A stretch of 64,000 nucleotides of DNA from Caecitellus pseudoparvulus. Taxonomy: Eukaryota; Protista; Bigyra: Bicosoecida. The position numbers and the translations under genes were made by a program. The notes beneath the pieces are model-generated. The model had not been told where the DNA came from. It was given only the letters and a program-made list of their open reading frames with translations, and did not search any database. The stretch spans positions 1-64,000 of the forward strand of contig CBFFRQ010000095.1 of assembly GCA_965644315.1 (NCBI GenBank), written 5' to 3'. Below are positions 1,487-42,002 of the stretch, piece after piece (within the stretch, counting starts at the first letter, position 1; each line of letters opens with the position of its first letter).

Positions 1487-4409
1487 TTTCCAAATGTCAA
1501 GCTAATCACAAGTTGTGAAGTGCTAACATTGCCTAATCCAGGCGCTCGTGCACCCAAGTGTGGTGTTGCACAGTGCTTGCTGGTTGGGTGGTGCGCACCG
1601 GGGCGGGGTAGTGCGAATTCCGCACACCATCGCACCGTGGCTCCCAGTTTGCGCCCTCGGTCGGGGCATGCACCTGGGATCGACATCAAAAGCATCATTG
1701 ACAAGCATCATGAACGCCCAAGTGGATCAAGTCCTGGGGGTCCTCTTCGTGGAGGGGTGCCTGAAGCGCAAGCAAGTGCTCGGCCCCAGAACAGGTGTCT
1801 TCACTGACATGCCACGTCGGGGTGCCGCACGCACCTTCGAGCTTGGAGGACCCCTGCCCAAGACTGATCATGATAGTTCATCTTCGGCACGGGACATGTG
1901 GCTCGAGGTCTATGGGGAAGCCGCCGAACGGCTGATCCCAGGGCTGAGTGCGGAATTCGGCAACGCCAATGCGGCCCTGCGCCAGGGACCCACCGGATCG
2001 CCAACCATCCTCGTCACGCTCGGAAGTGAGGGTGATTCACCAACAGTGGCACGTCAACTTCGCATTCTTGCTGCTCAAGAGGACGACTTCGCCATTCGAG
2101 TCGGCCAAGGTGGGTTCGTCGCCGTGGCCTACACCAACACCAAGCAGTTCGCATCGGCGAAGGCGAAAGTGAAGGTGAAGGCCCACCCCACCGCCATCCA
2201 AGTGGCCCACCAAGTGACCAAGGAAGCAACCGAAATCGCCTGCCAGTCAGGTGATGTTGCCAAGGTCATGTGCCTCGTTAGGTCCCACTTCGACCATGGC
2301 CCCGTGCCAGCCCAAGCCGTCCGTCCCAGTGTCAGACAATCCGTCCCCTCCGAGGGTGATGCACCTGTCGACACCAAGACACCATCGACCTGGACTGACA
2401 CTCAGCTCGACAAGGCACCGAAGAAGAAGAAGACCCGTCGAGGCAAGCGAGGAAAGGGCAAGTCAGCCGGACGATCCCTCACCTTCGAGGACGTCTTCAT
2501 CAAGAACGTCCGGCCACCTGCACCTCGACCAACCTCACCACCTGCCACCCAAGGCTCACCCAAAGATACCGTCACCACCCCTGTGGTGCATGCCATGTTG
2601 CCTTCATCAAGGGTGCAGCGGGGCGTCGACCGCAAGTGGCCGTCCCCCACCCCGTCGGGCGAGGCAAGCCCCGAGGTGCACCGGTATCGGCCGTCTGCAG
2701 CAGCAGCATGGGAGGTGATCACAAGGGTGGTGCCTCTTCATGACAGTGTGCGGACACCCGAGCACCTGGCCGAGTACCCCATCAAGCCTGGCCCTCTGGC
2801 CGACCTGCTGTCATCGACGCACGTGTACTCTACCGTGGGGGGCGGGCCTGTGTCCAGGCCTGTCTCGAGACGGCAGCAGGGGAGAGGGTCTTCGAGGCTG
2901 GGGACCTCCTCCTACTCCAGCATGCAGCCACCATCAACGCTGCCCAGCTTGCCTTCAAGCACATGGTCAGGCAGCTGGAGGGGGTGGTCAGTGACTCGTC
3001 CAGCTCGGACATCATGGACGTCGGCCAGAAGCCACCCTCCCCCTTCCGCTCAGACGGGCAACGGGTGGCCGTCTTCCGCAACATGCTGCACCAGCACTCG
3101 CCGGATGACACCTTCCTGGCCCCAGGTACACCACCAGTCCTGCTTCCCGGCCTGCACCTGCTCATCGACCGCATCAACCAAGGGTACCGTGCCCCAGCCG
3201 GGCATGATGACCTTGGCCAGGCCGGCGTCGACCCCAGCCAGGTTGATGAAGAGGGTGACCAAGAGGGGCACCTCGACGGAGTGCTGTATGCCTTCGCACT
3301 TCGAGAGGTGTGGACCGACAACACGGCCCATCTGCAGCTCATCCTCGTCGACCATGATCGAGGCAAGCTGGTGCTGTGGAACCCCGACATCCCTGACCTC
3401 CATGACGAGCTGCCCCTGCACAAGTGCATGACCCGGCTGGCAGCCGAAGGCATCAACGTCTTGTACCGGATCTGGACCACACCCGAGGCGGGCAGTCCAG
3501 CACCCTTCCGGGACAGGCTTCGAGGGGCACTCCAGTCTCTCCGAGATGACTTCCCCCCCCTGCCTCACAAGGCCACCGACGGCACCGTGCACCCCCAGAC
3601 CCTCATCGCTGGCAAGGGCACAAGGGTGGCCATGCCTCATGGGCGGATGACCCGACAGCAGGCCGCCACCCTGGAGGCTGAGGTCAAGGACCCCCTCAAG
3701 CGGCTGGTGCCTGAAGACGGCGAGGGTCGCCTGCCCAAGGTCAAGGATGTGCCCCACATCTCGATCGGGCAGATGGGTGGACGCCTGATGTAAGTCACCT
3801 GTGGGGGCATACTCCCTGTGCCACACATGACTGAAGCTTTGTGTCGCGACCGACGCACATAGCTGACATCGGACATTGGAAAGTCCAACCCAACCTCACC
3901 ATCACCAACCCAACATCGATACCAACACATCAGGACTCGGCTCAGTGGAAGGGGAAGGCACTTGCAGCAAGATCTGTGAGGCCGCCCCCAAACCTGAGCC
4001 GAAGGGACAGCCGGGCTGGGTCGTGTGCTTGCATCTCAGCAACACCCAGTCCGTGTCGAGTCCATATCCTCCAGCCCACACCGCCACCCAAGCCAAGCAA
4101 GTCGGGTCTCCACCCCTGGACATCGGACCGAGACGGACGAGACTGGACTGGACGGACAAGACAAGAGTGGACCGAGACCTGGACCTACACCTCAAGACCA
4201 TCCCACCGGGGCGGGCGCTGAAGCGCCAAGACAGACGGCGACTTATACAACGGACACGAGTCTGTGCTAGTCGCAAAGCCGTGCAAGCGGTGCCGTCGTG
4301 GTGTCTGTGTCACTGCATTCTGTTGTGGCGCAGGTGGCACCACATGTCCAAGCCCAAGCTGTACCATGATGTAGCCTGCATGGAGGCAATCTGCAATGCA
4401 TTGAGTAGC
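1487..4409 (+). mobile_element. Putative telomere-attached or telomere-inserted element (~2.9 kb), probably a non-autonomous or truncated retroelement
   Basis: Unique sequence bounded on both sides by telomeric repeats in the same orientation. ORFs on + run from the telomere toward the centromere, and the sense-strand 3' end joins C-rich repeats. No RT, endonuclease or terminal repeats were recognised. Confidence 0.55.
1710..3793 (+). CDS. Element ORF1, ~695 aa when joined across a -1 frameshift at the G6 run 2837-2842; unknown function, with basic KKKKTRRGKRGKGK segment
   Basis: The 1548..3431 frame reads protein-like up to ...LLSSTHVYSTVGG. The 2963..3793 frame is open from 2744 and reads protein-like from RACVQACLETAAGERVFEAGDLLLLQHAA. 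One extra G joins the two. The start may be ATG 1668 or 1710. Confidence 0.55.
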
Positions 4410-4412
4410 TAA
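3968..4412 (+). CDS. Possible downstream exon or ORF2 of the element, ending exactly at the internal telomeric tract
   Basis: Open frame 3867-4412 whose TAA stop is the first three bases of the telomeric tract. The GTAAGT donor at 3790 with CAG acceptors ending at 3967 or 4039 would splice it in frame to ORF1. Confidence 0.3.
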
Positions 4413-4473
4413 CCTAACCCTAACCCTAACCCTAACCATAACCCTAACCCTAACCCTAACCCTAACCCTAACC
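4410..4473. repeat. Interstitial telomeric tract, 11 units including a 5-mer (TAACC, 4410-4414) and a TAACCA variant (4433-4438)
   Basis: Read directly: gagtagc-taacc-taaccc x3-taacca-taaccc x5-taacc-atgctgtc. Confidence 0.98.
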
Positions 4474-7400
4474 ATGCTGTCAAGCATAGCCAAGTCAGCC
4501 CCTTCTGTGAGCGACAAGTGCAGCCCCCAAACTTTCAGGGAGCTGTCTCCGCACAACGCAGTCGTGTACGCTTCAATCAGCGTATCTGCAGTGAAGCCCT
4601 CATGAACGTGAAAGCTGCTCACGTTTGAGCCTGCTACTTTGCTCAGCTTCTGTAGAGCTTCGGTGGTTTTGCCACACCCCGGGCCGCCTGTGACGACCTC
4701 AAGTCCGGCCAGGTGTTGCATGTTCTGGCCAATGTCTGCAGTCAAGGACTGGATCTCAGCCTCTGAAGGCTCCCGGCACAGCTGCAGCTCGGAAAGGTCA
4801 GAGAATAACCCTTCACCTGCAGGAGAAGTAAAGATGAGGTGAACATGCACACGCAAAGATTGCCCGGCCACAGCAGCAGCGAGTTGCTCCAGCACAGTGG
4901 TCGGCAAGGTGTTGGGGGCAAGCACGTATGCGTAGCCAAAAGAGGCGTCAGCGCACGCCAAGCAGGACAAGAAGTCACTCATATCAGCAGTTGTTGTTGA
5001 GGCAGAGCATGAGAGCACTTGGTAGGGGGCGGGAAACGAATCCTCTTCTGCCCGGGAATGCAACAGGCACCCAGCAAGACAACTTCGCAGCGACGCGCCG
5101 GCACACTGCTGCCTGCTGGCATGGATGGGATCAGGCTCCTCCGGATACCGTTGTGCGCTTTGCAGGGCTTTAGCAAAAGCCTCAGCCGCCCAATTGAGTG
5201 CCTCACGTGCTGTGATCACTTGCGCCAACGACTCGCAGCTATCCGCCATGGAAGCTGCAGCAGCGCTGCGGTTTTCGGCAGCGGAGCCAATTCTTGCAGC
5301 CAAGTCAAACACCGCAACCAAAGAGTCCAAGTGCAAGTCCTTCTGAACTGCAGCCTTCTCTGCATCGGGCTCAGACTCGCTCGTGCCCTCTCCTGAGGCA
5401 GCACCGCCAGGAGCAGCCCTGCCCTTCGCCATGGTCAACACCAGTTCGAGGAGGCCCAGCAGCTGCTGTCGAGGCAAGTGAGACAGGTGTGGGGACAGAC
5501 TGCGAGCTTTCTCCAGCGCTTCTTTCCACGCTGTCAACTCCTCCTCCAAAAAGCCACAGAAAGCCTCCGTGGCCACAAGCAAGTTGCCTTCGTCAGATTC
5601 CACTCGCAGTGGGATGTCTCCCACCTTGGCCTGGTAGGCAGGATGCCCGAGCTGCTGCAAGTTGGACAACAGCGTCGCACAGAGCTGAGATGCTTCGTAG
5701 CTTGCGATGAAGTCATCAATCGCCTGATTCTTGACGGACGTTCGAGACAGACGCGCATTGAAAGCGTTCTCGTTCAACTGCTCTGGGGAGAGCACAAAGC
5801 TGGCTGATTCGCCTTGCGAGTACTTGAGCTGCACGCTTGCAGGACCACCCAGCGATGACGTTCGAGCGATGAAAGTTCCGCTTTCGACGAAAACGGGGGC
5901 TTGCAACAGAATTGCCCCGTTGCCAGAGCCTGACGATACCCCTTCCAACGCGTTCCGGAGCAGATCCCAGTTTGCCCCCAGCTCTTCAAGGCTGATCACT
6001 AATTGGTCAGCCGTGGCAAAGGGTCCATTCGTGACAGCAGTATTCAGAAGGTCTCTCAATTTTTCCAGAGTTAGACTCGAGTGCGCCGCTGCTCCACTTG
6101 CTCGCATGTGGGGCAGATTGGCCAGGAGGTCCTTCTGGCCCGCAAACTTGTCCAGAAGCTGCAAAACGAAGGGGTTCGCAGCTGAAGCTTTCTTCGCGAT
6201 GTCAATCTTCTCGTCCAAGCTTCCATCGTGCTCATGCAGGAAGTCCGCTACCTTCTGGAGCTCAGCCAGCGCTCTGATTCCACGGAGCTCGACCGAAGAG
6301 CAAGACGAAAAGGCGGCCCTGACTTCGTCAAGCAGCACCACGCAGTTACTCATTTGAATGCCTGCCATGTTGTTGATGCAGGGGGACAGCTTGGACTCAA
6401 CGCGCCCCGCTTCGTCGCCGGACCACACTCCGAACTTGAGAAGAGCCCGGATGCTCGAGAAGATTACACCTTTGAATGCCCACAGCTCTAAGCCAGCATT
6501 CAGGGCAGCTAGGCGAGCTTTGAGGCTGGCTGTGGACGACCCTGGCTCGAGCTGGAAGAAAGTCGCCACCGATCGCATTTCCGTTGAAAGATCCGCCGAG
6601 TCAAACTTGGTGTTTGTCAGCAACCCGGTGAGTTGTGTGCCTGTGAAATCTCCAAGCGTGCCCGTATCAGCCAGGACAAGCTCTTTCAATCCCTTGGTCG
6701 CTTCACTGACCCTGGCATTCACTCTCTTTTCAAGTGATTCCCCGTCGCGTGGACGAGCGCGCTCGTTTGCGGAAGACAGCAAGCTCAGAAACAGCTGATT
6801 CAGCGGGCTGCTAAAGTGGCGAAGGGCTGTGTATGTCTCATGGGCCACATTCAGCGCTGCGCGGGCTTCGCGCACACAGGCGGTGGCGTCACACAGCAAC
6901 ATCTCCGACAGCTCGTCCGGTGTGGCAAGGTCAGTCAGCACTGCGTCAGGCATGGCATCCTTCAGGAGGATGAGGACGGCACCATACTCGTGAAGCAGGG
7001 CCGTGGTCTCTGCAAGCTCTGCCTCACACGCTGTGCGAGCCTCCTGAAACGTGCCGGGCTCCTCAACGCATAAGCTGTCGAGCGCCAATGCGATGTCATC
7101 GTCCCACTCCTCTTGCCATTGCTGCACTTGCGATATAGAGACGCGTCGCTCTTGAAAGGAGATGAGCAGAGTACGAATGGACTTGCGGATACCTTCCACG
7201 CTTTGAAGCATGTCAGGTAGTTGTGGTGAAGCAGCTGTCGCAAGCAGCAGCTCAGCCAGTCGAGGTGCATAGTGCCAAGTCAACCAGCCAGCTTGACGAC
7301 CACTCTCCTCGATGCGCTTCAGGCAGTACAGCCCCAAGTCCTCTGATACAAACGACAAGGCTCCTTGCGTCTTCACAATTTGCTCCAGCACTGCTTTGAC

Positions 7401-10400
7401 AACTTCAAGCTGCGTGTCTATGTCTCCTGCACTTGACAAGAAGCAGGCGGCCAACGATTTGCACAGCTTGCAGTATGAGCCCTGCAAAGACGGGGACGCG
7501 CTGCCCAAGGCGTGCTCAGCTTGCAAAATTATGTCGCAGTTCAGCATACCCATGTTCGACAGCAAGGAGCGCAGGGCTCCTACAGGTGCGCTTTGACTGC
7601 CCAAGCGCGTGTCGAGTACAGCATCTGTGGAAGGGGCCCCAGAAGAAGCGTGCAGGGCCAAAAGGTGTGCGATAGCAGCAACCAGCTCCTTGTACTGATC
7701 CGAAGTTGGTGCCCTCGGGCCACTCAATGTGTCGCTCAAGACTTCCACCAAGGGATGCTTCAGCCGCTGTCCTAGCTTGTCCGCAGGCAGCTTGCATAAC
7801 TTGTTCCACACCGGAAGTGAGTCCCCCACAAAGTGCTCGACCGATGACCCAATCTCGCTCGTGACACCGTCTACACTCCGAAGGACTTTGGACAAGATCC
7901 ACTGGTGTGCAATCACAGCTGACTGTCGCACCTGGAGCAGAGGCAAGAGCGGGGCGAGTTGGGCACCAGGCGTCCCACAAACCCAGTTCCTACTCTCTGG
8001 GGACCACAGTTTAGCTCCAGCTTGCTTCACAAACCAGCCAGTAACCCCGTCAATTGAGAGCACGGTGCACAATGCAGTGATGCGGGAATCTTCTGGAGCC
8101 TCATCGAACACCTTCAATAAGCAGGTCCATGCCATTTTGAATAGCGAGATCGAAACAAGCATCGATGTTCCACCCTTTTCCGCCTTGAAAGTTGTTGCCA
8201 AGCGCACGAGCTTATTAATGGTGCCAGGAATCGCGGAGGGGTCCGCAAAGTGCAACGGCTCATAGCGCTCAGCCACGTACATCAAGACATCCTTCTTGTC
8301 CGACTCATCCAAAGCTGCCAAGGCGCTTCCATACAAAGGCTCCTGCAAGAAATCCTGAATAAGCTGCTCCGAGAATGACTCGAAGGTGTCTGCACTCGCT
8401 GTGCACAGATCAAAGCACTGCACCAACAGTTCCTTCGCAGCGTCCAGCCCAGCGTCCCCCTTGAACTCGGTATGCAGGCACAGCACAGCGGAGAGTGCAG
8501 ACAATGTTGATGCCTTCAAATTCCCACCTTCAGTTCCAGCTGCGGGCGCAGTCAGCAATCCCGTCCAGCCGAGGCTGTCATCCTCATGCAGAGCCCTTCT
8601 AAGCATGACAACCACCGTGGCGAGCACAATCTGCGTTGGCGCAGCCCAAGCAGCAGCTACGCATCCTTGTTCGATGCAGTCCTGCAGCAAGCTGGCAGCG
8701 GATGGTACGTAAGTCTCAAGGACTGCCAAGTTCTCAATGGTCCAATCCCGCAGTTCGCGAATAACTGCCGGCTGCATGGTCTCCAGCTCCTCCACATGCT
8801 GCGGAGTGGAAACTTCGAAAAAAGCCTTACAGGCACGCTCAAAGGCGCAGAGCACATGCCCCTTAACTTCGTCTCGAATGCCGTCGCAATGGAGAGTCAC
8901 CTGAAGTGCTGGAAGTAGGCCAATCATCTCGGATGGACCTGCTTGCTCAAGTGCCTGGCAGACCAGCTGTGCAAACTCTTCCTGGAAATGCTCCGCCCAA
9001 GAAGCCACATCAGTGAGCTCGTCAGCATGCTCATGTGACAGAAAAGCCACGCTGCCCTTGTTGCCGAGTTGCGCTGCACGGTCTAAGCGTTGCCGAAGGG
9101 CGACAAGAACCTCTGGGTCGACTATTGGAGACTCGAAGCCAGAATCACTAACGGAACCATCTGCCGTCTGAAACGAATCACTTTCGCTGTTTCCACGGTC
9201 ACGACTTGCAACGGGCGGCTGTTCTTGGCTTGGGATGCCCTCAACGCTGCCTTCAGAGTCAAGCTCGCACATCTGACCGCCACCTTGTGCAGACATTCCA
9301 AACCGTGAGCCGGCCTTGGTCACGAGGGCCTGAAGCGCGACACTGTCAGGCGGGCCCAGCTCATCTCCTCCACGCCCGTCTTGCTCTGCACCGGAAGATC
9401 TACGATCTGAATAAAGGCCGCCTTCCACTAATCTGCGGTGTGTGTGGCTGTCGGAAGCCTTGCCACCCCTCACCACCCACTTGCCCCCGCGCAGCTTGTA
9501 CGTCACACCCCCCACATCCACCACCCTCGCTTTCTTCCCATCCGACACCAACGCAGCACCATCGTCAAACACATAGTGCCTGATGACACTGTCCCACGTC
9601 ACTACATCTTTGAACTCCACGGGAACAGCAGGTGGTTCACCCGCCGGATCTGCTGCCGCCGCCGTGTCTTGAGATCCAGCACGTGGCGTCCTGGCATCCC
9701 CATCGCCAGCACCAGGCGACACAGCCACATTGCCACCGCCATCCTTGCCACCCCTCACCGCCCACTTGCCCCCGCGCAGCTTGTACGACACACCCCCCAC
9801 CTTGAAACTCTTCATGGCTTCCCCATCAGACACCAAAGCACGGCCATCATCCAGCACGTAGTACCCGATGTCACCGTTCCACGTCACCCTCCCTGTGTAC
9901 TCCGCTGGCACTGCAGGCGCCTCACACGCCGGACCTGCTGCCGCCGCCGTGTCTTGCGATCCAGCATGTTGCGTCCTGGCATCCCCATCGCCAGCACCAG
10001 GCGACACAGCCACACTGCCACCGCCGCCACCTTCAACACTCTCCTGCCCCGACTCCGCTGGCACTGCAGGCGCCTCACCCGCCGAACCTGCTGCCGCCGC
10101 CTTGTCTTGCGGCCCAGCATGTGGCACCCCACTATCCCTCTCGCCAGCACCAGGCATCACAGCCGCACTGCCACCGCCACTTTTCGCCATCCACTTGCCC
10201 CCGCGCAGCTTGTAAGTCACACCCCCCACATCCACCATTCTCGCTTTCTTCCCATCCGACACCAACGCAGCACCATCGTCAAACACATAGTGCCTGATGA
10301 CACTGTCCCACGTCACTACATCTTTGAACTCCGCGGGAACAGCAGGTGCCTCAAGCGTGCCTTCACGTTCTGCATGTGGCGTCCCACCGTCCCTCTCGCC

Positions 10401-11588
10401 AGCAACAGGCATCACAGCCGCAGTGCCACCGCCACTTTTCGCCATCCACTTGCCCCCGCGCAGCTTGTAAGTCACACCCCCCACATCCACCACCCTCGCA
10501 GTGTTCCCATCAGACACCAATGCATGGCCATCATCCAGCATGTAGTACCCGATGTCACTGTTCCACGTCACCCTCCCTGTGTACCCCGCTGGCACTGCAG
10601 GCGCCTCACCCGCTGAACCTGTTGCCGCCGCCGTGTCTTGAGATCCAGCATGTGGCGTCCTGGCATCCCCATCGCCAGCACCAGGCGACACAGCCGCACT
10701 GCGACCGCCACTTTTCACCGCCCACTTGCCCCCGCGCAGCTTGTAAGTCACACCCCCCACCTTGACACTCCTCTTGGCTTCCCCACCAGACACCAACGCA
10801 CGGCCATCATCCAGCACATAGTACTTGATGTCACCGTTCCACGTCACCCTCCCTGTGTACCCCGACGGCACTGCAGGCGCCTCACCCGCTGAACCTGTTG
10901 CCGCCGCCGTGTCTTGAGATCCAGCATGTGGCGTCCTGGCGTCCCCATCGCCAGCACCAGGCGACACCGCCGCACTGCCACCGCCACCTTCACCACTCTC
11001 CTGCCCCGACTCCGCCGGCACTGCAGGCGCCTCACACGCCGGATCTGCTGCCGCCGCCTTGTCTTGCGGCCCAGCATGTGGCACCCCACTATCCCTCTCG
11101 CCAGCACCAGGCATCACAGCCGCACTGCCACCGCCACCGCCGCCACTCTCCTGCCCCGACCCCGCTGGCACAGCAGGTGGCTCTTTGGCGGCAGGTTGTT
11201 CTGGGACAGCTCGGTTCCCGAGCTGACTCGCTGCACTTTCTAGCTGGTGAGCGAAAGCAGACTTGCCTCGTGCAATGATTGGCCTTAGGTCAATACTGTC
11301 GCAATCTGCCGCCTGGAGGGTCAAGTCGTGCAGCTTGTACAACTTGGAACCAACTTTCACCTTTTCCTTGAGTCGATTTGGAAACTTGAAAATGCGCCCA
11401 TCCTCTGCAACATACTTCCCTATGTTGTCTACCCAAAACAGCAATCCACAGCTCTCGTGCCGCACGACGTTCGCACGTTGCCCAGCACAGTCGTAGGCCT
11501 CATCGTCGCTGTCCCAGTCCTCCTCTGTGGCCCTTGGTACAAGATCCCACTGCACACCTGACTGCGGAGGATCGTCCTCTGCTGCCAT
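4474..11588 (-). pseudogene. RNF213 (mysterin)-like giant AAA+ protein, 3'-truncated within its first AAA module; ORF reads on through the telomeric tract to a stop at 4185
   Basis: Ordered motifs resemble the RNF213 stalk-to-AAA1 region: LQQLGHPAYQ; ELTAWKEALEKARSLSPHLSHLPRQQLLGL; FPAPYQVLSCSASTTTADMSDFL; YAYVLAPNTL; P-loop VVTGGPGCGKTT (4662-4688); LHLSL. These are followed by VRVRVR from the telomeric repeats. First ATG is at 11588, and upstream exons are possible. The frame is otherwise intact. Confidence 0.65.
9470..11170 (-). repeat. Coding tandem repeats at the N-terminus of the RNF213-like ORF: five ~45-aa beta-rich modules separated by Gly/Ala linkers
   Basis: Type A (TGRVTWNGDIxYYVLDDGRALVS...VGGVTYKLRGGKW) and type B (FKDVVTWDSVIRHYVFDDGAALVSDGKKAR...VGGVTYKLRGGKW) in the order A,A,B,A,B. 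The linkers AVSPGAGDGDARTPHAGSQD and AVMPGAGERDSGVPHAGPQD also recur. Confidence 0.95.
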
Positions 11589-12544
11589 AGTCCTTGATGC
11601 TGTGAGACTAGTGGCACTTCCCCACCTGCGCAAGCGCTACGGGGCACGTGAGCAGTGCTCTTCAACACTCTGACCAGCAGTTGCGACAGCAGCCTTGCAG
11701 GAGGCATCAGCTCTGCACAGTCCCGGACAAAGACGCTGGAGCTGAAAGAGAAGCCACAAGAAAGTCTAAATTTGGAAGCAGAACACTCACAGAGGACTCT
11801 CAAGCCGATGGCAAAGTGATGTGGACTCAAGTTCAACTGTCCACGAGTATTCTCGTGAGCGAACTGCAAGAGAGCGTATCAGGCCGAAAGATCAGCAAAC
11901 AGGAAGGGATGCAGCCAGGCTCATGCCCCTGATATCGCATGTCATCCCTCACGCTTTCGCTCGAAAGAAGATTTGCGGTCCCGTCCGTTGTGCAGTGGAA
12001 GCACGCGCTCGGCGTCATCTGCGTTTCGGCATGAAACTCTGCTGCCGCAGGAGACTTCGATCGCCACTTCCCTTCGGAACAGTCTCAACATCGTCAGAAG
12101 GCAGAGGACTCTGACAAATGACCTACAAATATCTCAGCCTCTTATCATCGTGCAGCGCACTGAGTCGTCTGTAGCGCGATAAATCAACAATTGCCATGGA
12201 TGTGGTTCTTGCTGGCTGCTTCTGCCACGCATTGCGTGCCACCTTGGGTCCCTTGCCGAAGAAAGAGAACCCTGCCTCATAGCGTGGCGCTTTTCAGCTT
12301 GATCAACCCTACCCACGCCATTGAGCAGGGTTTTTCATGAGTCCTTTCGCGTTCATGGCTCGCCTGGTTTCTCTTCCCGATCAGAATCGTCGACTTGTGC
12401 GATGCAGACAGTGACAAGCACGCAAACCTTGTCGCAACAAGTGAGTGGCAGCCATTGTGGCATTCCTTAAATTCCTGTGTGCTGCGATTTAGATCTTTTG
12501 TCGGGTTTGAGACTGTATCCATGTTCCTTGCCGTTTAGGTGGCC

Positions 12545-14833
12545 TCAGGAACCCCCTTGAGGCATTGAATGAAGTGTCGGTGTGAAGGATGCAGGAATGC
12601 CATCGGGCATGCCACTTGCGGGGCCCTGTGCAGCATCGCACGCTGCATGCATAATTGGCGACATAATCTCCTCTAACTCTGCCTGCTTCCCTTTGTATGC
12701 CTCTACCCCCGCGGATGGGTTGGCCGCCAACCACTCGATGGCCGACCTGACAGCTGCGCGTGCTGCTTCAGAGTCCTCTGCCGACAGACTCAAAAGCGGA
12801 GCTTCACCCTCCAGGAAACTTCTAGCGGAATAAGCGTACTTCTCAAGGTACTGCTTGGCTTTAATGCGACCCTCGGAGCGTTCTGCAGCTGACATGTGCC
12901 ACTCAGCCTCAACCATGCGCTCGATGTCGGCGAGCTTCAAGTGCCTTGACTTACGCGTGATCGTGACCATTTCAGCTCTGCCACTTCCTGTGTCCATTGC
13001 TGAAACGTTTAGTGTGCCATCCACGGAGATGCGGAAAGTGACCTCGATCTGGGGCACCCCTCGAGGCATGGGATGAATGCTGCCCAGCTGGAGCTCTGCG
13101 AGCAAGTGGGTGGTCTTGGAAAGCCGGTGCCCCCCTTCGTACAGTTTCAAGGATATGCTCGCTTGATTATCAGTCTGGGTGGTGAAGGTGTGAGTTTGCA
13201 CAGCAGGCAATAGCGAGCTGCGGGGAACCAAGGGCGTTATTGTCCCGTCCGGGCTCTCAACGCACAGAGACAGGGAAGATGTGTCCAAAACCAGTATCCT
13301 GTCGAGCCTGTCAGAGCGGTGGGGATCAGCCAGGATGGCAGCATGAACAGCAGCACCGTAAGCGACGGCCTCGTCGGGGTTGATGCGCTTGCAGGGCTCC
13401 ATGCCGAAAAACTCGGTGAGCATGGACTGGATGCGGGGGATGCGGCTGGAGCCGCCGACCAGCACGACCTCGTGCACGTTGGCCTTGGACACGCTGGAGT
13501 CGTCTAGCATGCGCCCTATCATTCCGATGGTCCGTGCCAAGTCAGTTTCGCACAGCTCCTCGAAGCGGGTGCGGGTGATGGTGGTGGAGTAGTCCACACC
13601 CTCGAACAGGCTGTCGATCTCGATGAAGGCCTCGGTGGAGGAGGACAGGCTGCGCTTGGCACGCTCGCAGGCAGTGCGCAGGCGGCGCTTGGCGCGCTCG
13701 GAGGTGGACAGGTCCTTGCCGCGGTGCTTGCGCTTGAAGTCGGCGAGGCAGTAGTCCACCAGGCGGTTGTCGAAGTCCTCACCGCCCAGGTGAGTGTCAC
13801 CCGCAGTAGCCTTGACCTCGAAGATGCCGTCCTCAATGGTTAGCAGGGACACGTCGAAGGTACCGCCACCCAGGTCGAAGATGAGCACGTTCTTCTCGCC
13901 GTCGGTCTTGTCCAGGCCGTAGGCAATGGCAGCGGCTGTGGGCTCGTTGATGATGCGCAGGACGTTCAGGCCGGAGATGGTGCCGGCGTCCTTGGTGGCC
14001 TGGCGCTGGCCGTCGTTGAAGTAAGCGGGCACGGTGATGACTGCCTGCTTAACGTCGCCACCCAGGAAGGACTCAGCCACTTCCTTCATCTTGACGAGGA
14101 CCATGGCGGAGATCTCTTCCGCATGGAAGCGCTTGCTCTCGCCCTTGTATTGCACCTCAATGAGGGGCATGTCGCCGGGGCCTTGCACCAGCTTAAACGG
14201 CCAGTGCTTGGTGTCGGCCTGGACGACAGGGTCGGAGAACTTGCGGCCAATCAAGCGTTTCGCGCCAAACACCGTGTTAGCAGGGTTCACCACTACCTGG
14301 CTCTTGGCGGCATCACCGATCAGGCGCTCGGAGTCAGTGAAGGCCACATAGGACGGGGTGGTGCGATTGCCTTGCCTGCAACGAGAAGGATTGAAGGCAC
14401 TAATTGATATAGCAGCTCAGTAAGTCAAGGGGTGTACGGTGACACAACGCAAGCAAGCACCACCGAAGACGACAACGCATCCAGTGAAACATGCTCTCGA
14501 TATCCTCACTCGTTTGCAATGATCTCCACACGCTCACTTTCCCACACGCCAACACAAGAGTACGTGGTGCCTGGATAGAGGAAGCATCAAACGTTTAGAT
14601 GCCAGGCGCTGCAGACACTGGACTTGGTTGCGGAAACTGAGAGCCACCACGCCAAACTTTAACGGAGCGCTCTCCACGAACCTAGATCGATTCCCAGCGC
14701 AAACTCGGCATCCTGTAAGGTTAAATGCAAATTTATACAAGTTGTATGGAGTTTGAGACGCGATCAGGCACTGGAAAAGACAAGGAGCTGTGCACACAAA
14801 CTGCTCTTCACGCACATGGGATTCGGCTGCCAT
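12545..14833 (-). CDS. HSP70: Hsp70 family chaperone, cytosolic-type ATPase domain with divergent substrate-binding domain; 4 exons (14833-14816, 14712-14682, 14570-14510, 14375-12545)
   Basis: Spliced N-terminus MAAESH|[11 protein letters not shown]|[20 protein letters not shown]|[12 protein letters not shown] with GT..AG introns. Motifs: [65 protein letters not shown]. Confidence 0.97.
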
Positions 14834-15097
14834 GAAGGCCGTCGAGCGTGCTACCTTTCGACTCAACGTACACGAAACACGCTCCAAGCACGCAAAGCGC
14901 CTAGTTTGACAGCAATACTGGCTCGTCTGCTCCTCACTTGAGCACTGCGCTTGTGTTTTGCCAGGTCTGCCTGTCATGCCTGGCAGTCGCACCAGATGGA
15001 CTTCGACAAGGGTGATATTTGCATGGATTTATCGGTTGAGTTACGAGGCCACAGACAAAGTTCTGCAGTAGTTCGCTCCGAGCAGTGCGCCCAGCGC

Positions 15098-18000
15098 TCA
15101 CTCCTCAGAAACCGCATCCAAGACGTGGCTCTTCGATCGCTGTGCTCCGTAGCTGAGCTCAGCTTGGGCTTCCACCTCGTCCGGGGGAGCAGTGGCGACT
15201 GGAGTTGTGGCTGACTCCGAGCTCCAAGTCCGCGTCAGGGCGGATGTCGTGCCAGCGCTTGAGACGCCATCACCCACAGTCTGTGCCCACGGCCGGAAGA
15301 GTGGCACGCCTGCAAAGCGCTTGCGGTCACCAAGCAGCGCCCACGCCGTGCAGCCTGCTGCACATGCGACCCACAGGACTGCAGCGACGATGACCCCTGT
15401 TGAGCCAGCGGCATACATGTCACCGGTCTCTGCCAGCGCAAAGTTCGATGACTGCACCGAGGCATCAGTGTCCTGCAAGCTGCCATCCTCGATGCCTTGC
15501 TCGGGGAACGTGACTGAGACTGCCGGCGCAGTGGCCCACACCACCACGAGGAGCCATGCCGTCACTGCAGCAGCGCCATACGACAAAGCAACTAGGGGGC
15601 GAAGGCGCTTCATCAAGAAGGTGGATGCCGGCCTGAACAGGGACCAGGCAGCAAACACAGTCAGCAAACAAGCACCGACCAGCACCGCGGCGCCAGTACT
15701 GCTGCGGGCTAGAACTGTGCCTGCCCACGCCACGCTGACCTTCATGGAGACCAAAGCACACCAGAAAACTGCGGAAGGGTGGGCTTCAAACGCGTGCCCC
15801 CACCTACGCAGGGCTGCAAGGAACCGCGGGTGGCTGAGTTTCCTGGGATTAAACCCGCGACTGCCCAGCTGGGCATGCTCTTCAGAGGGAACCATTTGCT
15901 GGCCATGAATGGAGAAGACCTGCTTTGCCAGTGCGTGTCCAAGAATGCTGGCCAGGTCGTACTGGGTCTCCAGTGACCTGTCGTGGTACATGCGTCGTGG
16001 TAGGTGCACCAGCACCAGATTCAGCAGCAGTGCAATGAGAAGACACGAGACAGCCATTAAGGAAATGTGCAGGTTACCCCAGCAAGGGTCTGGGAGGCAG
16101 TTTCCATCTTCGTCGCGGCTGTAACCTCCAAAGGGGAACCCGCAAGTGAACGGCTGCATGAGCACGACCAAGGTTGGCACCAGACCAACTGTGCCGAGAA
16201 TGTACAGCGCCACTGGGACAAAGCCTCTGTACAAGGCGATGTTGCGGACCACAGAGGTCTCCTGCTGTGCTGTTGGCAGGGCATCTCCATTGGCAAGGTG
16301 CCGCACACGGGCAAGGCGTCGGCGCGCTTGCCGTGGAGCCTGCTTCGAGTATTTGGGGCCAGCAGTGGAGGCTGTCTCTGCTGTGACGACACTTGCTGCC
16401 CGAGCTTGGTCTTCTTTCTGGCGTCTGCCATGTTGAACCGGCGGCACTCGCTGGGCAAGACTGCCTGCACCTGGCTGGCGCTTGGCTCCCTGTGTATGCA
16501 GCGGCTTCAGGGTCGCTCGCTGAGGCCGGCCTGGGCGACGCTGTCGGCTGGCCACAGAGGCTGTCCCAATGGATACATCTGACACGTTGGCGGTGGGGGC
16601 CACGGACCGTGTGCCTGCTGACGACTTGGATACTGCGCTGCTCCTCCTCTGGCCGGCTGGGTAAGGGGCGACGGAGGAGTGGGCGGACCCTCGCTTGTGC
16701 TTGCGGCGCCCCATGCGGAGCAGGGCTGCGGCCCGCTGCTGTGACAACATGGGCACTGCAATGGCTAGGCCCAGAATAGTCAATCCGGCAACTACGTAGA
16801 AGAAGGAGTACAGCGGAATGTACTTGATGGCAGAGAGTGACAGCAATCTAACGAGAACCTTGACTGGTACGTACGGGAGCCATGGGATCTGCTCAACAAA
16901 CAACGGAGCAACGCTCATGATGGAGTCAGAGGCAATGAGGCAGACGAGGAGCACATTGCGCCAGTTGGCCCACAGTTGTGGGGGGGTGTACCCAGTCAGT
17001 GCGGGCTTGGATGCGACGGCGGAAGCAGGCAGGGCTGCCACGTTGCTGTTCACTGCGCTCTGCGTGCTCTCATCTTCCTCGCTCAGCGCGAGGTGGGCTG
17101 AAGAGGAGGTAGACCCTCGGCGATGAGCAAGTGCGGCTGCATGGCCAGGTCCTGACTCGAGGCTGTCACTGTCAGACGTATCTGAAACCGGTGCGACTTG
17201 GTGTACGCCTCGAACCCTGTCCAGAAGCTCCACGACCGCCTGTGGAACTTCCGCGTGGGAGAACACTCGAAGGAATCGCAAGGCATGGGCGTGCACGGCA
17301 GCCATAGTCGGCGTGTGCCACTGGTCCACAGTGTTGCGATCGAACCAATCTGCTTGTCGCATCCACAGCAGGTGCCCGAGGGCCAGCAAAGCTGCTACGA
17401 CAGCAGCCGCCACTGTTGCAGACGTTTGCTCAGACGATTCTTCGGCAGGGAATGCCGCTGAGATGCGGAAGGCCGTCTCGGCGGCTTTGCAGGCCTCGTC
17501 AGCGACAGCTGCAGCTGGCCGCGGCTGGCACTCGTCCAAGTCACATGCCGTGCTGTCAGCCAAGAAGGCGGGACAGGCCGCTCCTCCGTACGCTGGTGGA
17601 ATGAGGACCTCTCGGGTGCGGGTCATGGTGCCAGTCAGCACCCCCGTGCTTGAGTTGCGATCGGCAGTGAAGTTGGACCACGCACTGACCAGGCAGTCGG
17701 ACGCACACGGCGAAGCGCTGCACAGTGCAGGGCTGTCAGAGCACAACTCCCCCTTGCAAAAGGGGTCCATGCCGTCTGCCGCGTGAGAAGCATCGCATTG
17801 GCACTGGCCGCCCCGGGGCCTGCCCCAAGTTCCAGCGCCATACCCCACACACGTCCCATGCCCGTGGCATGTTGCCTCTTCAGCCGCGAGAGGGTCACAA
17901 GTGCAGCAAGCCCCGCCCATCCAGCCATCGTCGCAGACGCACTGGGAGCTCCCAGCATACACCTTTCCGTCGTCCACAGCCAGGCCTGCCTCGGGAAACG

Positions 18001-21000
18001 CGACAAGACCCACGACAGAAGCAGCCGTTGAGTTGCTTGGAAGGCACCGCCCGTTCCCGCTGCATGTGTGCAACGCGTCACACGTTACTTGCACTGGGAG
18101 CGCAGCGTACCGCACAAACGTCGCCTGTGCTGCCCCCGGTGCGAGCAAAGGCGAGCGGACGCCAGACCACGACAGCACCACCGCATGGTTCACAACAGTG
18201 CCAGGCTGCGTGCCTCGCGGAACTGCGAAAGTGTGCTGCAAGGACAAGGAGTCCCCGTCTTGGATCACAGGGAAGATGCTGCCCACAACATCGAACCCTG
18301 ATGCCGCCTGCAGCAGGCGTTGGGAAAGGGCCGCAGAGCCTGACCCTCCCAAGCCATCCAAAACGGCGTTCATACCCTCAGGCTCCCGCAGAAGGGTCAG
18401 CACGTCCCTCCGCTCAGCTGCAGAAAGGGACTGCCGGGAGAAAACTCCCGGCGTCCCGCCATTCAACTGCACCGTGGGCGAGCCGAGCAGCTCCGTTGCG
18501 CCGCCGAGGCTCACGATGTACACGGACACGTTCACAGCATTGACCGTGAAGCCAGTGCCACGTCCAACAATCTCAGCGTCGAGCGTGTACCGTTGCTCCG
18601 TGGACACTACTGCGCTGCCATTCACACGAGCGTCCATGTCCAGATCATGGGCCACCGCAACGAAAGCAGGGGCCGATGAGGACTGCAGTGGCTGCGCTGG
18701 TGCGCTCACTGACGCCAACAGGAGCAAAGAACTGGCCGCTCGGGAATCACTGGCACTTGTCGGCACTGCACTGACCCGGAATGCAAGTACATCCGTCACA
18801 GCATTGTCAGTGTCCCCGTTGCTGATTGTGCACGTGTCGAACACAGCCCACCTGCCGCCTGGCCCGAGGGACAGAGACTCGACGAACGCAGAGTGCGGTG
18901 AAGTGCCTGCGCATGATGGCACAAACGAGTGTCCTGCAGGGAGCACGTGCTCGACCCGCAGGCTGTTTGCAAAGAATACCGCCCCCTGTCGCGCAGAAGT
19001 TACATTCACGCGCAGTGGGCCGGTCACGCCTTCCGGGAGTGCCAGGCGAACCTGAATCTGCAGCTCCTCCCCAACAGCTGCAAGAGGGGCCCCGGTTGAT
19101 GTCACCCGTCCACTTGCAGATGCGACTGACATGTTCAGCATGGCAACCCCCGGAACAGTCACAAAGGAGGGCACCGGGCCGCCGACGGGCGCAGAGCCGA
19201 CAGGCATCTGTTCCAGGTCGGAGGAAGTGAAGAACCGCGCAGTAGATGCTGTTGGGTGCGAAGTCCAGCTCACACTCAGCGCAGGCGAAAAGGTTGACGA
19301 TGAGCGCACGCCTGGCAGCAATCGAACAGTCCACGAGACGTTTGCGGTGGTGCCAAATGGAAGGGTGGGCAGAAATGCAACAGCATTCGAGCCCCTTGCT
19401 GTAACAGATGAAGAAACATCCACACCGTCAACGCTTGCGGCGACAAAGGAGTACAACTGCTGAGAAAGGGTGGCATCCTCCACCAGCACGTTGAAGGCGG
19501 GCGCGGCTGCCACCGCCAAGCTTGCATGCGACATTCGCAGCTGCCATGTCACAAGGTCTGCCGCATCAGCGCTGAAGTTCTCGGGTGAAGGCATGAGAGG
19601 GTTCAGCAAGCGGGGCTGAGTCAAAACCAAGCTTTGTGGCGCAGAACCCTGCACAACAGAGCCCACAGGCTGTGGTGCATGCATGCTAGGCAGGACGGAG
19701 CCATTCGCTGCTCTGTCGTAGGACAGCCTAACGGGGTCTCCACCCACCAGGCTGGGAATGGTGGGCGAAGTAGCATTCAAGCTCGCCAGGCGGGCGTCGA
19801 CGATGAAACGCAGACGAATCGGGGCTCCAGATGCCAGGGGTCCTGTAGGCAGGCCTTGGCTATCCCTCGACGGAACTGAAACGAAGGTGCACAGGTCCAG
19901 GAGAAGATCGCCATTGCTGAGCTGAGAAAGCGCAGCCGGGGCCAGATCAGAGAGGGATCCACTCGTCAACACCCCGTCCAGGACACCACTCCTGCACCCA
20001 AGCAGAGTAACATCCTCGGACACGTCCGTGCCAGACACATCTGCTGCAACAGATACAAGCTGGGGAGACACCACAACGCCCGGCATGTTGTGAAGCGGTG
20101 CAGTGAGCACTAAGGCACCCACTGTTCCGAGGGGAATGGAGGCGTCAACTTCCATGCGGATACGCTGGCCGAGCACAACTGGCTGAGAACTCGGGAACCC
20201 TGTAGAAACAGCCGACGCGCTGGCTGAGGAGTCTGAGGGGTGTGGAGACACGGAAACGCGGCTCACTTCCACTTCCACGGCTTGTTCAACCTGCAGCTGA
20301 GCATCCTGTGCGGCTGTGAGATTCAAGGGTCCGTGGTGTCGTGCATACGGGTTGGAGGGGTCTTTGTGCGTCCCGTACAGCACTTGTAGTGAAGGCTTCA
20401 GGGTGCTCTGCGGCATCACACCTTGCAGCAGCCGCCACCTGTATGCAAGTGTGCTTGACCCTGTCGCACGTGAGAGCGCCGGAGCTCCAGTCGGAGACAA
20501 AGGAGTGCCGGGCGGCACCAAGTCCCCGTTCCCACTTGAGAAGAGCGACGATGCGGCCAGTGCAATTGCAGGAGGCAAGAGCTCGACACCCATGGACACG
20601 AGCTTCACGGGCTGGTACAGGCCCTGGCCCACGGCGTCCAGGGTCAGTGCCGTGTCTCGCATGCGGACATGATAAGCAGTCGCGTCCGAAAGACTAGTGT
20701 GGCTGGCAGTAACAGTGGTATCTATGGCAGCACCCGCGAAAGCAGCTGACGCAGAGTTCAATACAGACACGATGGTGATGTTTGGCTCAAGCACCTCCAC
20801 CTCGGGGGCACGGGCAGTTAGATTGGCCACGCTGGGCACCACTGCTGCCCCTGAGATGACACCAGCGCTTGGATTCTCTGGAGGAGTTGGGGCAGGCACG
20901 GAATCAGAGAGCACCTGCACCAAGGCAGCAACCCGGGAACCTCTCAGGCTATCCTGCAGCGGCAGTGCACGTCCGTCGACAAAAGCCGAAAACGTGAGCA

Positions 21001-24000
21001 ACAGTGCTTGCGAGACGCCGCTTGACGTGTCAGAGTTGATCACATCACACAGCGGCACAACGATGTCTGTGTTCACGACTGTCCCCGCGTCCTGTCGCAC
21101 GTGGACAGAGGAAGCTGAGACCAGCTCTGGAAACTGTGGCCCAGAGAGAACGCCTCGGGCGTGTGATGGCAGACCAGCGCAGTCTGTGCCATTTACCAAA
21201 ACAGCTCCAGATGCGCCACCCTGTATGCGCACAGACTCAAGGCGTGCTTCTGCGAGGAGTTGGGGTGTCGGGGAAGGCACCGCCATTCCCACAGGGAATG
21301 CAGCTGACACATTCAACACTGCAACAAGCCCGGACGATACACCCTGCGGAAGGGCAAGGGCAACATCCCACGTGATCTTGCCTCCCACAGCAGCCACTGA
21401 ATCGGCATCTGAGGAGTCGTCTGTGGTGGTCTGGATGTTCACAACCGGGGCTTGAACGCCGATGACAGGGTTCACAGGAGCTGGCGCGGAGTATGCCCTT
21501 GAAGCGTTCACGACAGGTGCTGAGACCCAAGAACAGTTGAACTGTGGGCGGACAGCTGTGGCAGCCGCTACGCCTTCCCACAGACGAATGGTGATCGCAA
21601 CGTCAACGCTCGTACCGACTCGCAGCTCTGGCAGGGTTGCCCAGAGGCCTTCAGATCTAGATGAGGCTGCAGCTCCCTGCAAGTCCACGGCAGTCGCTGC
21701 GTCAAAGAGAACGGAACCATCGACCACGACGCGTCTCAAGTCGTATGCTCGGGCGTCCAAGACTTCGTTGGACACGGCTTCTCCGCCAGCCGTCACGTAG
21801 TCGACCTTCCCATGCACAAGACTCTGATCAAAAAGCTGCACGTGATAGGCCACGGAGTCGCTCACTGCAGCGTGTGAAAGGGTGGCAGTGAATGTGATGT
21901 CATCACCTGCCTCGACGTCTGCAACCGCGGCAGGAGTGAAGACGAGAGGAGACAGCTCCGGTTCGACGACCACGGCGTCTGCAAGCGTCACCACGCGATC
22001 CGCGAAGAGGCCGCTGGTGGACTTCAACGAGAAGGTGGCTGGGACCGTGGCACCCCTGACGACGCTTGATGCCGTCGTCGCGGACGCTTCCATGCTGAGC
22101 TCCAGCGCGATGGGCGTTCCAGATGCGCCAGATGATGCGGTCCCAACTGGGTCGCCGGGGAACAGATTTGCACGTTCCGTTCCGACCCTCCACGAAATGG
22201 CAGGCTGATAGATTGTGGTGGTATTCTTGATCAGCTGCACAGGCGGGGTGCCGGTACTCGCCCCCTGAATCAAGCTGACTAGATCCCACTCTGAGCCTGG
22301 AAAGGCGTCGACACCTGTGACCCTGTCTACGGGCAAAAGGACCTTGACGGAATCCCTTGCTGGCGGGCTCAAGGCAGCCAAAGCTGACGGTGGGGTAGCC
22401 AGGGGGAACGGCACAGACAGCTGGGTGTGAGCAGCGACGGAGAACTCTTTGAAAAAGTCGCCGGCGGGCGCTTGTGAGTCCAGGGAGAACTCCACATCTG
22501 CAAGTGTGCTCAGAGGCAGCAAGACCCTTGCACTCCATACAATTGCCGTGCCTGGTGCAAGGACTGGTGCGGCAGATTTCACCCCTGCTGAGGCGTCACC
22601 GGCAACCACTCCCGTGGCAGTGGGCACGGCCATGGTCATGGCGCTCTGAGACGCCCCGGCATCAGGAGATGCTACATAGAGGCGGCCTCTGCTGGGATCA
22701 GGGTGAGACCAGTATGAGACGTTCATGGTCGTGGCAGGGTTGGCTGAAGCTCCAGCTTCTGAAGCGGGCGCTACGAAGTACACAAAAGAAAGGTCAGAGG
22801 CACGCCCGTCCAGAGGAAGGGAGGTGTTCGTCGGAAGCAATGAGGTGACCTGTGGCAATTCCACGGCAGAGGAGCCGTTCCAAACCACCGATGCCAGCTG
22901 GTAGAGCAGGCGCGAGCTTGGTGACACCGCACTAGGGGTAACGTTGGCTGCGTGTGAAACATGCAGCCAAGAGTCCTGCACCTGAACACCGTATGCAAGC
23001 CAAGTGCTGGCAGAATCATGTTGCAGCTGCATGGAAAACAGGACAGAATCGCCCGAGCCGAGGCCTTGGAGGGCGGACGCTGGGTCGCTCTGGCCGAGCG
23101 GCGGCACGGCCTCTACGGTGACATCGAGCAGCAAGGGTTCTAGCACAGTAATGGGGTGCAGGGTGGCGTTTGCCGTGATGCCTGCGGCAGCGAACCTTGC
23201 AGTGCTCCTTATCTGAGATCCGTTGACGTTCGATGGGTGATCACGCACAACACCAGAGAACCGCAGCACAAGAGGGTCACCACTGCTGCTTCCTCCTGCA
23301 GTGAAATCATTGACAATGTCCCTGAACTGGAACTCGAAAAGACCCGATACCGTGTTTGCAGTGGACAAGCTTGTGAAAGTGCTCAGGTTGGCTTGAAGGC
23401 CGCCACCAAAGCGCACCCCGGTGCCACCCGAGACACCAACTAACCGCAGGGAGGAAAGAACGTCGCCGGTGGCAAGCACGTTCGCGCCGATTTGAACTGA
23501 TAGATTCGCTTCAGCCAGATACCCAAGTGGGAACTGCAGTGGCAGGTCAACTTGAGCATCCCAGCCAACGCTTACTTGCGAGTCAGAGAGCGTGTCCAGG
23601 GCGGCAAACGGGTCAAGTGATCCAAGAGCAAACGACCCAGGAATGGACGCGTTTGCGCGGGTGGTGAAGTTGCTTGCCCAAGCCAAGTGGGGGTGGCTCG
23701 CCGCCCACGCAGTCAGATCAACATGGAACGGCAGCAGCGTATCAGCGAGAGGGTTCGTCTGCACCGTCAGCACCACCTGCGACATGCCCCCTGCAGGGAC
23801 TGAGGCAAGCACGGCAGCTTGTGCGAAGCCCTGAACTCCCTCGGCCCCCACTACAAGCCAAGGCGCTCCAGAAGCGTCGAAAGCCACTTCCCCTGACCTG
23901 TCCACAACACAAGCCCCATCAATGAACACATGTGACACATCGTACTGAGCCGAGCCCAAACCAGCGTCGCTGAGGGCGATTGAGTAGGCGCCGCTCTGAG

Positions 24001-33000: not shown

Positions 33001-33058
33001 GCGTGCCTTGCACGGCGCCGAGAAGTGCCAAGAGGCACAGAATGACACATGTGTGCAT
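15098..33058 (-). CDS. Giant (~5,800 aa) cell-surface protein: signal peptide, N-terminal Cys-containing domain, long array of Ig-like/beta-sandwich repeats, EGF-like and TSP1 domains, multi-pass membrane C-terminus
   Basis: ATG 33058 gives MHTCVILCLLALLGAVQGTHWR|FGKLSWQ...IAW|RRTYF...DHS|GSFDH...SCCRISTLANGA|(G)DGAWNLW through four GT..AG introns (first is 32993-32721), then one ~17 kb exon. EGF-like CSGNGRC..CVCDDGWMGGAC. TSP1 DCLVSAWSNF..GTMTRTREVLIPPAYGGAACP. About eight hydrophobic helices in 17420-15330. Confidence 0.88.
25016..29451 (-). repeat. 975-bp (325-aa) near-identical coding tandem repeat: about 3.7 copies at 25848-29451 plus a further half-unit at 25016-25470
   Basis: Near-identical shadow ORFs recur at 25960, 26935, 27910 and 28885 (spacing 975). 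Only scattered substitutions separate the copies. Confidence 0.98.
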
Positions 33059-33797
33059 CCTGTGTACTTCCTGGTACGATGAAAGCTGGCCGAACGTGCG
33101 GCTGGGAGTCCAGCAGCGCCTCGAAGCTGTCCACGCACGCCCAGCTCAGCTGCTCCGACGAAGCAATGGTCCACGGAGCACTGCAGGCAGCAGGATCAGA
33201 ATGCAGGGTAATCAAGCTCATCAGCAGCAAGACTTGTTCGTGATTAAGTTATTGTGTTCCGCATCTACCAGATGTGCGCCAGCACGCAGTCCGGCTTTGC
33301 CCCGCTCACGTGCGGGCTCGACGTCGGGAGAAGTCGTGGCCTGGCCCGCTGCCTCCACGCATAGCGCGCGCCTACAGAGCACCGCAGCTCACCACAGACT
33401 GAAACGCGTCGTATTCGGGGTTATCATACACTGTTCCGGTCAGACAAAGACCTCTTGTTGTTGAACTTCATCGGCTCGCAGGGCAACCAAGTGGCAAAAC
33501 ATGGGCGCAACACACAGTGTGTAGGCCCTGGCTGAGGTACCGCTCACTTTCTAGGCGAAACTGGTGCTGTGTACTTCAAAATAAACAAAAAATCTTGCTG
33601 GGGGCAACTGTACTGCACCCCCTTCCTTTAGGCACACTTGCCTCATTCGATTACGCTCCGCTCAGCTGGCACTCTTCAGCTTCAAACTGAAGCAGCTGTT
33701 GGCGTTTCATGAAACCCGGCACGGGGACTGTGTTTGTGCTCACAAGCGCTTTAGGATTGAGTCCTTGCGCCCTGCTCTCTGAGATAGCCGTTGCAGC

Positions 33798-39252: not shown

Positions 39253-39734
39253 GGCTGCTGGTCTGCTGCGGAAACCTGCCAGCCTTCAGGGGTCCATGCG
39301 GATTTTGAGCACGACAGCGTTTCCACTTTGTGTGCACCCTTGCAGGGACTCAGCGGCGCTAGCGGCAGCGAAAAGGCGCAGTGGGGGAAGTGGAGACCCA
39401 ATGGCATGTATCCCGGTGAGCGCTTGTACCTGCCCAGCTCATGACTTTGAGAACGGCCCCCCACAACAGTTCAGTCACCCCCCCTTCGAATTTGCCATCA
39501 CCATGGTTCCGCAAGGCGCCTGCCGGGCCGGCCACCCAGGCACATTCCCGAGCCACCTCACCCCCGCCACACGTGTGGCAGTGCTTGAACACTCGTGCTC
39601 TGTGTGTACCCGTGCAAGGTCACCCCGAGCCCGCGGCGTGCGCACCTGAGCACTGCCGCTGCCCTTCCCGGCGGCCTGGCACACGCCAACCGACATCTGG
39701 GTGCAGGGCGACACCTTGCGCTTGCAGTGCGGCC

Positions 39735-41773: not shown

Positions 41774-42002
41774 TGCGCGTGCCGGGCGGGGGTGGGCCGC
41801 CGCCCACACCCCGCGCAACGCACTCTTTGCTGCAGGCCACACGAAGCCTGCCACTCGGCCTGACTGTTCCTGGCGGGGCGGGCGCTGCCCTGCCCCGCCC
41901 TCGCCGCTGACGCGGTGCTGCTGACCCTACAAGCGCAGTGTGCCGCCCGCCCGCTGCAGGCAGCTGGGCCTCCAAGACCAATGCATTGCGCGCATCGCTG
42001 GC

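Follow-up and report, generated by a model that had tools for sequence, protein, structure and literature searches.

Healed chromosome ends in other systems

Terminal deletions healed inside genes are already known from Plasmodium, Magnaporthe and human 22q13, and the chromosome end described here is a clean case that brings no new principle. Drosophila has no telomerase, and the addition of its telomeric elements HeT-A and TART to broken ends uses poly(A) tails. These elements transpose to chromosome ends only (PMC2173066). In Plasmodium falciparum, telomere healing has been found inside var, rifin and lsap2 genes, including five ends of the 3D7 reference, and all nine healing sites (9/9) could anneal to the template (PMC5550746). 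In Magnaporthe oryzae, whose telomeres carry the retroelements MoTeR1 and MoTeR2, 19 of 24 de novo telomere events had seeds of 1–4 nt (PMC7367193). The human 22q13 deletions include both healing and capture, mostly with 1–5 nt of microhomology, and 14 of the cloned breakpoints were seeded (PMC3136441).

The locus studied here is a chromosome end of the bicosoecid Caecitellus pseudoparvulus, at which telomere repeats are fused to an RNF213-like gene and are followed outward by a telomeric retroelement. It resembles the Plasmodium ends in that the repeats are fused into the coding region of a member of a subtelomeric multigene family, all distal DNA is lost and several such ends occur per genome. 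It differs from them in having no base in register at the join, whereas all nine Plasmodium sites have seeds, and in the retroelement, which does not follow the repeats there. With M. oryzae it shares the presence of telomerase together with arrays of autonomous and non-autonomous telomeric retroelements, as well as short interstitial telomere tracts, de novo healing of truncated ends and the existence of an end in more than one version, as seen there in culture. The autonomous partner of the element described here has an APE endonuclease, whereas the endonuclease of MoTeR1 is of another type. The human deletions present the same TTAGGG repeat on breaks within genes, and seedless joins are known among them, but they are without a layer of telomeric retroelements and represent constitutional pathology, not the routine turnover of ends. 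As with HeT-A and TART, a protein-coding partner without reverse transcriptase (RT) is added to the chromosome end, 3′ end first and head to tail; unlike in Drosophila, the genome has a TERT, and the gene is separated from the element by ten telomere units.

Organization of the chromosome end

The window, i.e., the whole stretch of 64,000 nucleotides that was analysed, constitutes the left end of contig C95, which is 246 kb long, in an assembly of 30.6 Mb and 215 contigs. Inward from the end, it presents 1,486 bp of terminal telomere (positions 1–1486, 247.7 perfect TAACCC units); a 2.9-kb retroelement without RT (1487–4413, plus strand, with the 3′ end facing the centromere); a 60-bp healing tract of ten 6-nt units in the GGTTAG register (4414–4473, minus strand); and a gene on the minus strand, of which the 5′ 37% is retained (4476–11588). 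The initial annotation had recognized the telomeric nature of the tract, which stands, but its size of 64 bp must be reduced, since bases 4409–4413 belong to the element, as its invariant 3′ end.

Further inside the window, positions 12545–14833 contain an Hsp70 gene with a divergent C-terminal part, whose best matches are only about 60% identical; the full-length matches from named organisms, at about 60–62%, come mainly from stramenopiles and alveolates. A minus-strand frame of 5,745 codons, with internal repeats of about 975 bp, occupies positions 15098–32335, and its sole match within the 4,966 aa scanned was a weak one to TSP1. In the frame at 57624–62135 (1,503 aa), which belongs to a family with many copies genome-wide, a 114-bp ankyrin unit occurs about 19 times.

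The truncated gene and its sister copies

The minus-strand frame starts with an ATG at 11588 and runs through 2,371 native codons to position 4476, without stop or frameshift, and then passes directly into telomere repeats, much as the initial annotation had described it (an uninterrupted frame of about 2,370 codons). On the minus strand the join reads ...GACAGCAT followed immediately by GGTTAGGG, the last native base being 4474 and the added GGTTAG starting at 4473. The retained part encodes, in order, a repeat-rich N-terminus, a helical arm, a presumed AAA1 and the first part of AAA2. Tandem repeats of 150–285 bp are located in the N-terminal part (9458–11177, minus strand) and have diverged from the copy on contig C57 (83%). 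The cut lies 63 codons past the last residue of the Walker A motif GGPGCGKT (4665–4688, minus strand), close to the 60 or so estimated earlier.

Past the join, the frame remains open for 96 further codons and ends with a TAA, the stop being at 4185. This new C-terminus of the stump (4185–4475, minus strand) would consist of about 21 telomere-coded residues, a poly Val-Arg run, and of about 75 residues antisense to the element. The Val-Arg run is a consequence of the frame, as telomere repeats are open in two of three frames, and Val-Arg repeats are known as a reading of TTAGGG (PMC9992779). The window ORF alone had no match in Pfam or PDB searches.

A search of the same genome revealed five other copies that cross the join, on contigs C57, C64, C173, C184 and C197, with 95–99% identity over the last 288 bp. 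The alignment of these copies to the window holds to the exact base of the join; none of them ends at this position, and all five run past 4474 and continue differently from the window. They remain in frame there (...DS/N-ILAHLALCN), while the window reads ...DS-MVRVRV. The copy on C57 is a single ORF of 6,300 codons, with about 3,970 residues (63%) beyond the cut, and C173 has a matching 3′ part, 92% identical to that of C57, which ends at a normal stop. Because the five copies read through and the C57 copy has about 3,970 residues more, the gene did not end naturally at this point, and a natural C-terminus at the cut is ruled out by the C57 ORF. Judged by these alignments, the window gene is truncated relative to its sister copies, with the corresponding 63% gone, as the initial annotation had supposed in proposing that over half of the gene was lost. 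The join itself is very probably present in the molecules.

The comparison over window positions 4474–7577 showed that similarity stops at 5909 for C184 and C197 and at 7577 for C64. The RNF213-like copies have the AAA core in common and seemingly different N-terminal parts, composing a mosaic family. Contigs C64 and C129 both start, at base 1, in the middle of an RNF213-like copy, at points of the gene separated by about 5 kb, and are probably one gene divided by an assembly gap. C64 was also considered as a second healed copy and was rejected, for it starts mid-gene and has no telomere. In addition, C62 (454240–473762) contains two distant RNF213-like frames (29% aa identity) in tandem, of 5,957 and 3,973 codons.

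Identity of the gene

The family was reached only via the lost part of the gene, as carried by C57. In a phmmer search of the PDB, this part matches nine RNF213 chains (best E value 7e-22), with alignments that span the Walker B motif of AAA3, AAA4 and the region after AAA4, and the earlier designation of the gene as RNF213-like is thus supported through its paralogue. For the C57 region around the cut, the PDB search matched only midasin, weakly. Walker A motifs occur three times in C57, at residues 2262, 2750 and 3402, and the window copy retains only the first of them; the third aligns to the GKPGSSKS of RNF213, and the Walker B of AAA3 is located between this one and the second.

In RNF213, AAA1 is without Walker A and B motifs, AAA2 binds ATP and hydrolysis is performed only by AAA3 and AAA4 (PMC7311170). 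Since the AAA1 of RNF213 has no Walker A and the P-loop before the cut is the first of three, the interrupted module would be AAA2 in the RNF213 numbering, and not AAA1 as first annotated; this assignment follows the order of the motifs, not a direct alignment. The stump is without the catalytic units AAA3 and AAA4 or anything after them, and it is most likely a null allele.

As in RNF213/mysterin (PMC7311170; PDB 9jwg, 9g08 and 6tax), the protein is giant, its dynein-like AAA core being preceded by a long N-terminal arm. The family described here differs in its size of 6,300 aa, in being intronless and in its copy number (at least five close and two distant copies, located for the most part near chromosome ends). 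Unlike RNF213, the C57 copy presents no C3HC4 (RING) pattern in its 3′ part and no RING or RZ match in Pfam, and for this reason the gene is called RNF213-like and not a proven orthologue.

The join and the ten-unit tract

On the G strand, the native sequence at the join is ...CAGCAT, followed by TCT(T/C)GC in the sister copies and by GGTTAG in the window. The initial annotation had taken the GGTT as native gene sequence that seeded telomerase, and had proposed an alignment across 4474 to read the native continuation. With the five copies aligned, the continuation is TCT(T/C)GC; all of them carry TCT at this site, so that a native GGTT seed is ruled out and the GGTT is added DNA. The in-register overlap at the join is 0 nt, with TTAG expected and GCAT found, which match only at the A (−2), and the nearest telomere-like 4-mers are located about 30 nt from the join, on either side.

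The repeats are fused directly to the native ...CAT, with no filler, and the ten units run 5′ to 3′ towards the end on the G strand. They comprise five GGTTAG, one GGTTAT and four GGTTAG, after which comes the element's own end, GTTAGCTAC. The tract starts and finishes on whole GGTTAG units, and a separate GTTAG step is found at the element's own end. The single variant unit GGTTAT (4438–4443, minus strand) occurs in no other tract among the approximately 30 joins read. This unit repeats the AT/GG step of the break, as though the enzyme had extended an AT end twice.

A TERT is present in the genome, in a 1,389-aa frame on C77 (PF12009, 79 bits) that also contains the RT match. In each of its cycles, the human telomerase synthesizes six nucleotides, with dG first (PMC12920920). 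Because the tract consists of whole units in the register of the human enzyme and TERT is present, telomerase is favoured as its source, although a register taken from human may not be that of this organism's template. The short tract under the element may represent a telomere that was short, an RNA tail or the remainder of a long telomere near whose base the element was inserted; this last case is possible because the autonomous partner has an APE endonuclease.

The telomeric retroelement

The element at 1487–4413 has at least 45 near-identical copies in the assembly, mostly near contig ends and in uniform orientation. It is homologous (37–43% aa identity) to residues 1–593 of a 2,087-aa frame on C184 that encodes an APE endonuclease and an RT, and for this reason it is considered the RT-less partner of a telomeric LINE. 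Joins were read in about 20 of the partner copies, which number at least 45. The 3′ joins examined hold from 0 to about 150 repeats, most often 0–3, so that a short tract under the element is the rule in this genome. These short tracts are often scarred (GTTAG, TTTAG, GGTTTGG or an extra G), and the terminal tracts are almost perfect.

The capping element of the window is 99.9% identical to 19 other copies and, in relation to them, has two private bases, 2819 and 2833, an allele found once in the assembly. The two bases are 14 bp apart, next to a G run that carries an extra G in two other copies. They argue against the copy of a ready-made cap, and could also result from a consensus error.

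Contig C173 and the DNA that was lost

Contig C173 (29,288 bp) starts with a telomere at base 1 and presents elements to 11,104, then about 6 kb with an ankyrin gene, and then an intact RNF213-like 3′ part from 17,150 to the contig end, which is 288 bp past the join. These last 288 bp overlap window positions 4474–4761 with three differences, namely the base private to the window at 4556 and the sites 4575 and 4662. The final 99 bp are identical to the window, and differ at two sites from C57 and at six to seven from the other copies.

The 3′ parts of the family are located on C57, C173, C184, C197 and C129, and the parts that span the join on C57, C95, C64, C184 and C197. C173 was also considered as the missing part of C64 and rejected, at only 86% identity; because of this and of the half-gene counts, the pairs that remain are C95 with C173 and C64 with C129. 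From this pairing of sequences, C173 probably represents the unbroken version of the C95 end, on another homologue or in another cell lineage. The simplest reading, held with the same modest confidence, would be one chromosome with two versions of its end, one of them 18 kb shorter. The lost DNA most likely corresponds to C173:11,105–29,000, about 18 kb, which includes 11.9 kb of the gene and about 6 kb with the ankyrin gene. Alternatively, C173 could represent a different end, the 5′ half of which was collapsed or lost. With 3 of the 288 bases different, C173 is not the parent sequence itself. C57 was rejected as the homologous chromosome, as window segments 11,400–21,300 and 33,000–42,900 have no near-identical copy elsewhere in the assembly.

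The right ends of C184 and C197 bear telomeres and each has an RNF213-like gene; the two stop at homologous bases, with 99% identity over 1.5 kb, and no third contig overlaps the stopping point. They would be alternative versions of one chromosome end, and their divergence of 1% equals that between C173 and the window. On C184 (16971–17716), the RNF213-like gene is the last host gene of the end, and about 740 bp separate its stop from an element and a telomere cap.

The ankyrin frame of C173 (11105–13981, 956 codons) has as its stop the TAG of the single repeat beneath the element. An ankyrin copy on C13, 80% similar, continues into SEL1-like repeats, and the last 64 codons are unaligned. The C173 frame probably marks another healed break, on the very version of the end that is presumed to be intact.

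Age of the break

In this frame 3.6% of substitutions create a stop, and the zero stops in 2,371 codons bound neutral change at about 82 substitutions, i.e., ≤1.2%. Because of this stop-free frame and of the 99.9% identity between the capping element and 19 other copies, the break is considered recent, on the stop-decay scale, which is the closest dating possible; both lines agree with the recent event first proposed. The pN/pS of the window against C57 is 0.25–0.33. Among the changes private to the window, 31 are non-synonymous and 25 synonymous (25/56, P = 0.0009 against neutrality), a pN/pS of about 0.4 that is not significantly different from that of C57 (P = 0.15).

Mechanism and alternative explanations

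We propose a terminal deletion, a seedless addition of ten units by telomerase, the addition of the partner element by the LINE and a telomerase cap, a scheme to which we assign a probability slightly above even. One copy of the chromosome would have been broken or resected to 4474, inside AAA2, a point established by comparison with the paralogues. Telomerase would have engaged ...GCAT, a 3′ end of non-telomeric sequence that offers hardly any pairing, and performed ten GGTTAG cycles; in one of these an error would have occurred at the final position, and the resulting end would have been extended in the same way. The APE-RT machinery of the LINE would have copied the RNA of the RT-less partner onto this end, from the ...GCUAAC 3′ end of the RNA, and telomerase would have capped the 5′ end of the element with about 250 repeats. 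We infer the order of these steps.

Against this scheme, there is no in-register seed, unlike at most healed ends elsewhere, and the same register would be obtained from an element RNA with CUAACC repeats at its end. The retroelement may have healed the break directly, with the LINE RT primed on the raw break and the repeats copied from the C-rich tail of the RNA, through read-through of the donor copy or slippage on the CUAACC end, and with telomerase acting only later, at the 5′ end of the element. The join without seed speaks for this reading, and the many element 3′ joins with 0–3 repeats, often scarred and unlike the perfect terminal tracts, point the same way, as do the single repeat between the element and the interrupted frame at the C173 end, the existence of an APE-RT partner and the confinement of the elements to ends, with the 3′ end facing the centromere. 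However, nine of the ten units are perfect and share a single register, a tract longer and cleaner than most scarred joins; the GTTAG step looks as if the element had been added to a finished ...GGTTAG end; and no assembled donor has both private bases. We regard direct healing by the LINE as rather unlikely. Similarly doubtful is the wider proposition that LINE RT, and not telomerase, wrote the ten units on the seedless break and that end-trimming turns over the RNF213-like family, with broken and unbroken ends coexisting.

It is improbable that the broken end captured the tract, element and telomere of another end by break-induced replication, via a 2-nt AT match to a GGTTAT-type repeat. Such a route is known (PMC3136441, PMC7367193), the AT/GG of the join is the same step as that within the variant unit, and the near identity of the elements from dozens of ends would make a donor hard to see; but the copy of a ready-made cap is less favoured because the private bases occur once in the assembly and the variant unit is absent from the other tracts read (about 20 of the at least 45 element joins). 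To an assembly artefact or a minority molecule, with C173 as the sole true end and the C95 cap as a wrong join or one present in few cells, we give the same low probability as to capture. The overlap with C173 falls exactly at this point, and the family has several copies of 93–98% similarity, two of them divided between contigs. On the other hand, no shared sequence at the join could have misled an assembler, the polarity of the cap is correct, the tract is unique and the private bases of the element are present, while the private base 4556 and the differences from C173 at 4575 and 4662 are as in a separate haplotype. That the short form is a selected, functional protein with the N-terminal arm only, or a programmed end, is very improbable. 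The frame is intact, with a stop 96 codons on, and the private changes are skewed to synonymous ones, but this skew is expected from the time before the break, the cut falls in the middle of a domain, the new tail is unrelated sequence and the private pN/pS is not distinguishable from that of C57 at the significance given above.

Significance for the organism and the gene family

With telomerase addition followed by the LINE partner as the preferred reading, this end provides a healed break that is resolved to the base and verified against paralogues, in a protist equipped with telomerase as well as telomere-specific LINEs, and the likely before (C173) and after (C95) versions of one end are found in the same assembly. 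The seedless join of whole units bears on the need for pairing of this telomerase, or on the LINE enzyme as healer. If the LINE RT wrote the tract, the elements themselves would heal broken chromosomes in a telomerase-positive cell, and routine trimming would turn over subtelomeric RNF213-like, possibly immune, genes. Chromosome ends in this organism delete RNF213-like genes, and the stump in the window most likely represents a natural loss-of-function allele.
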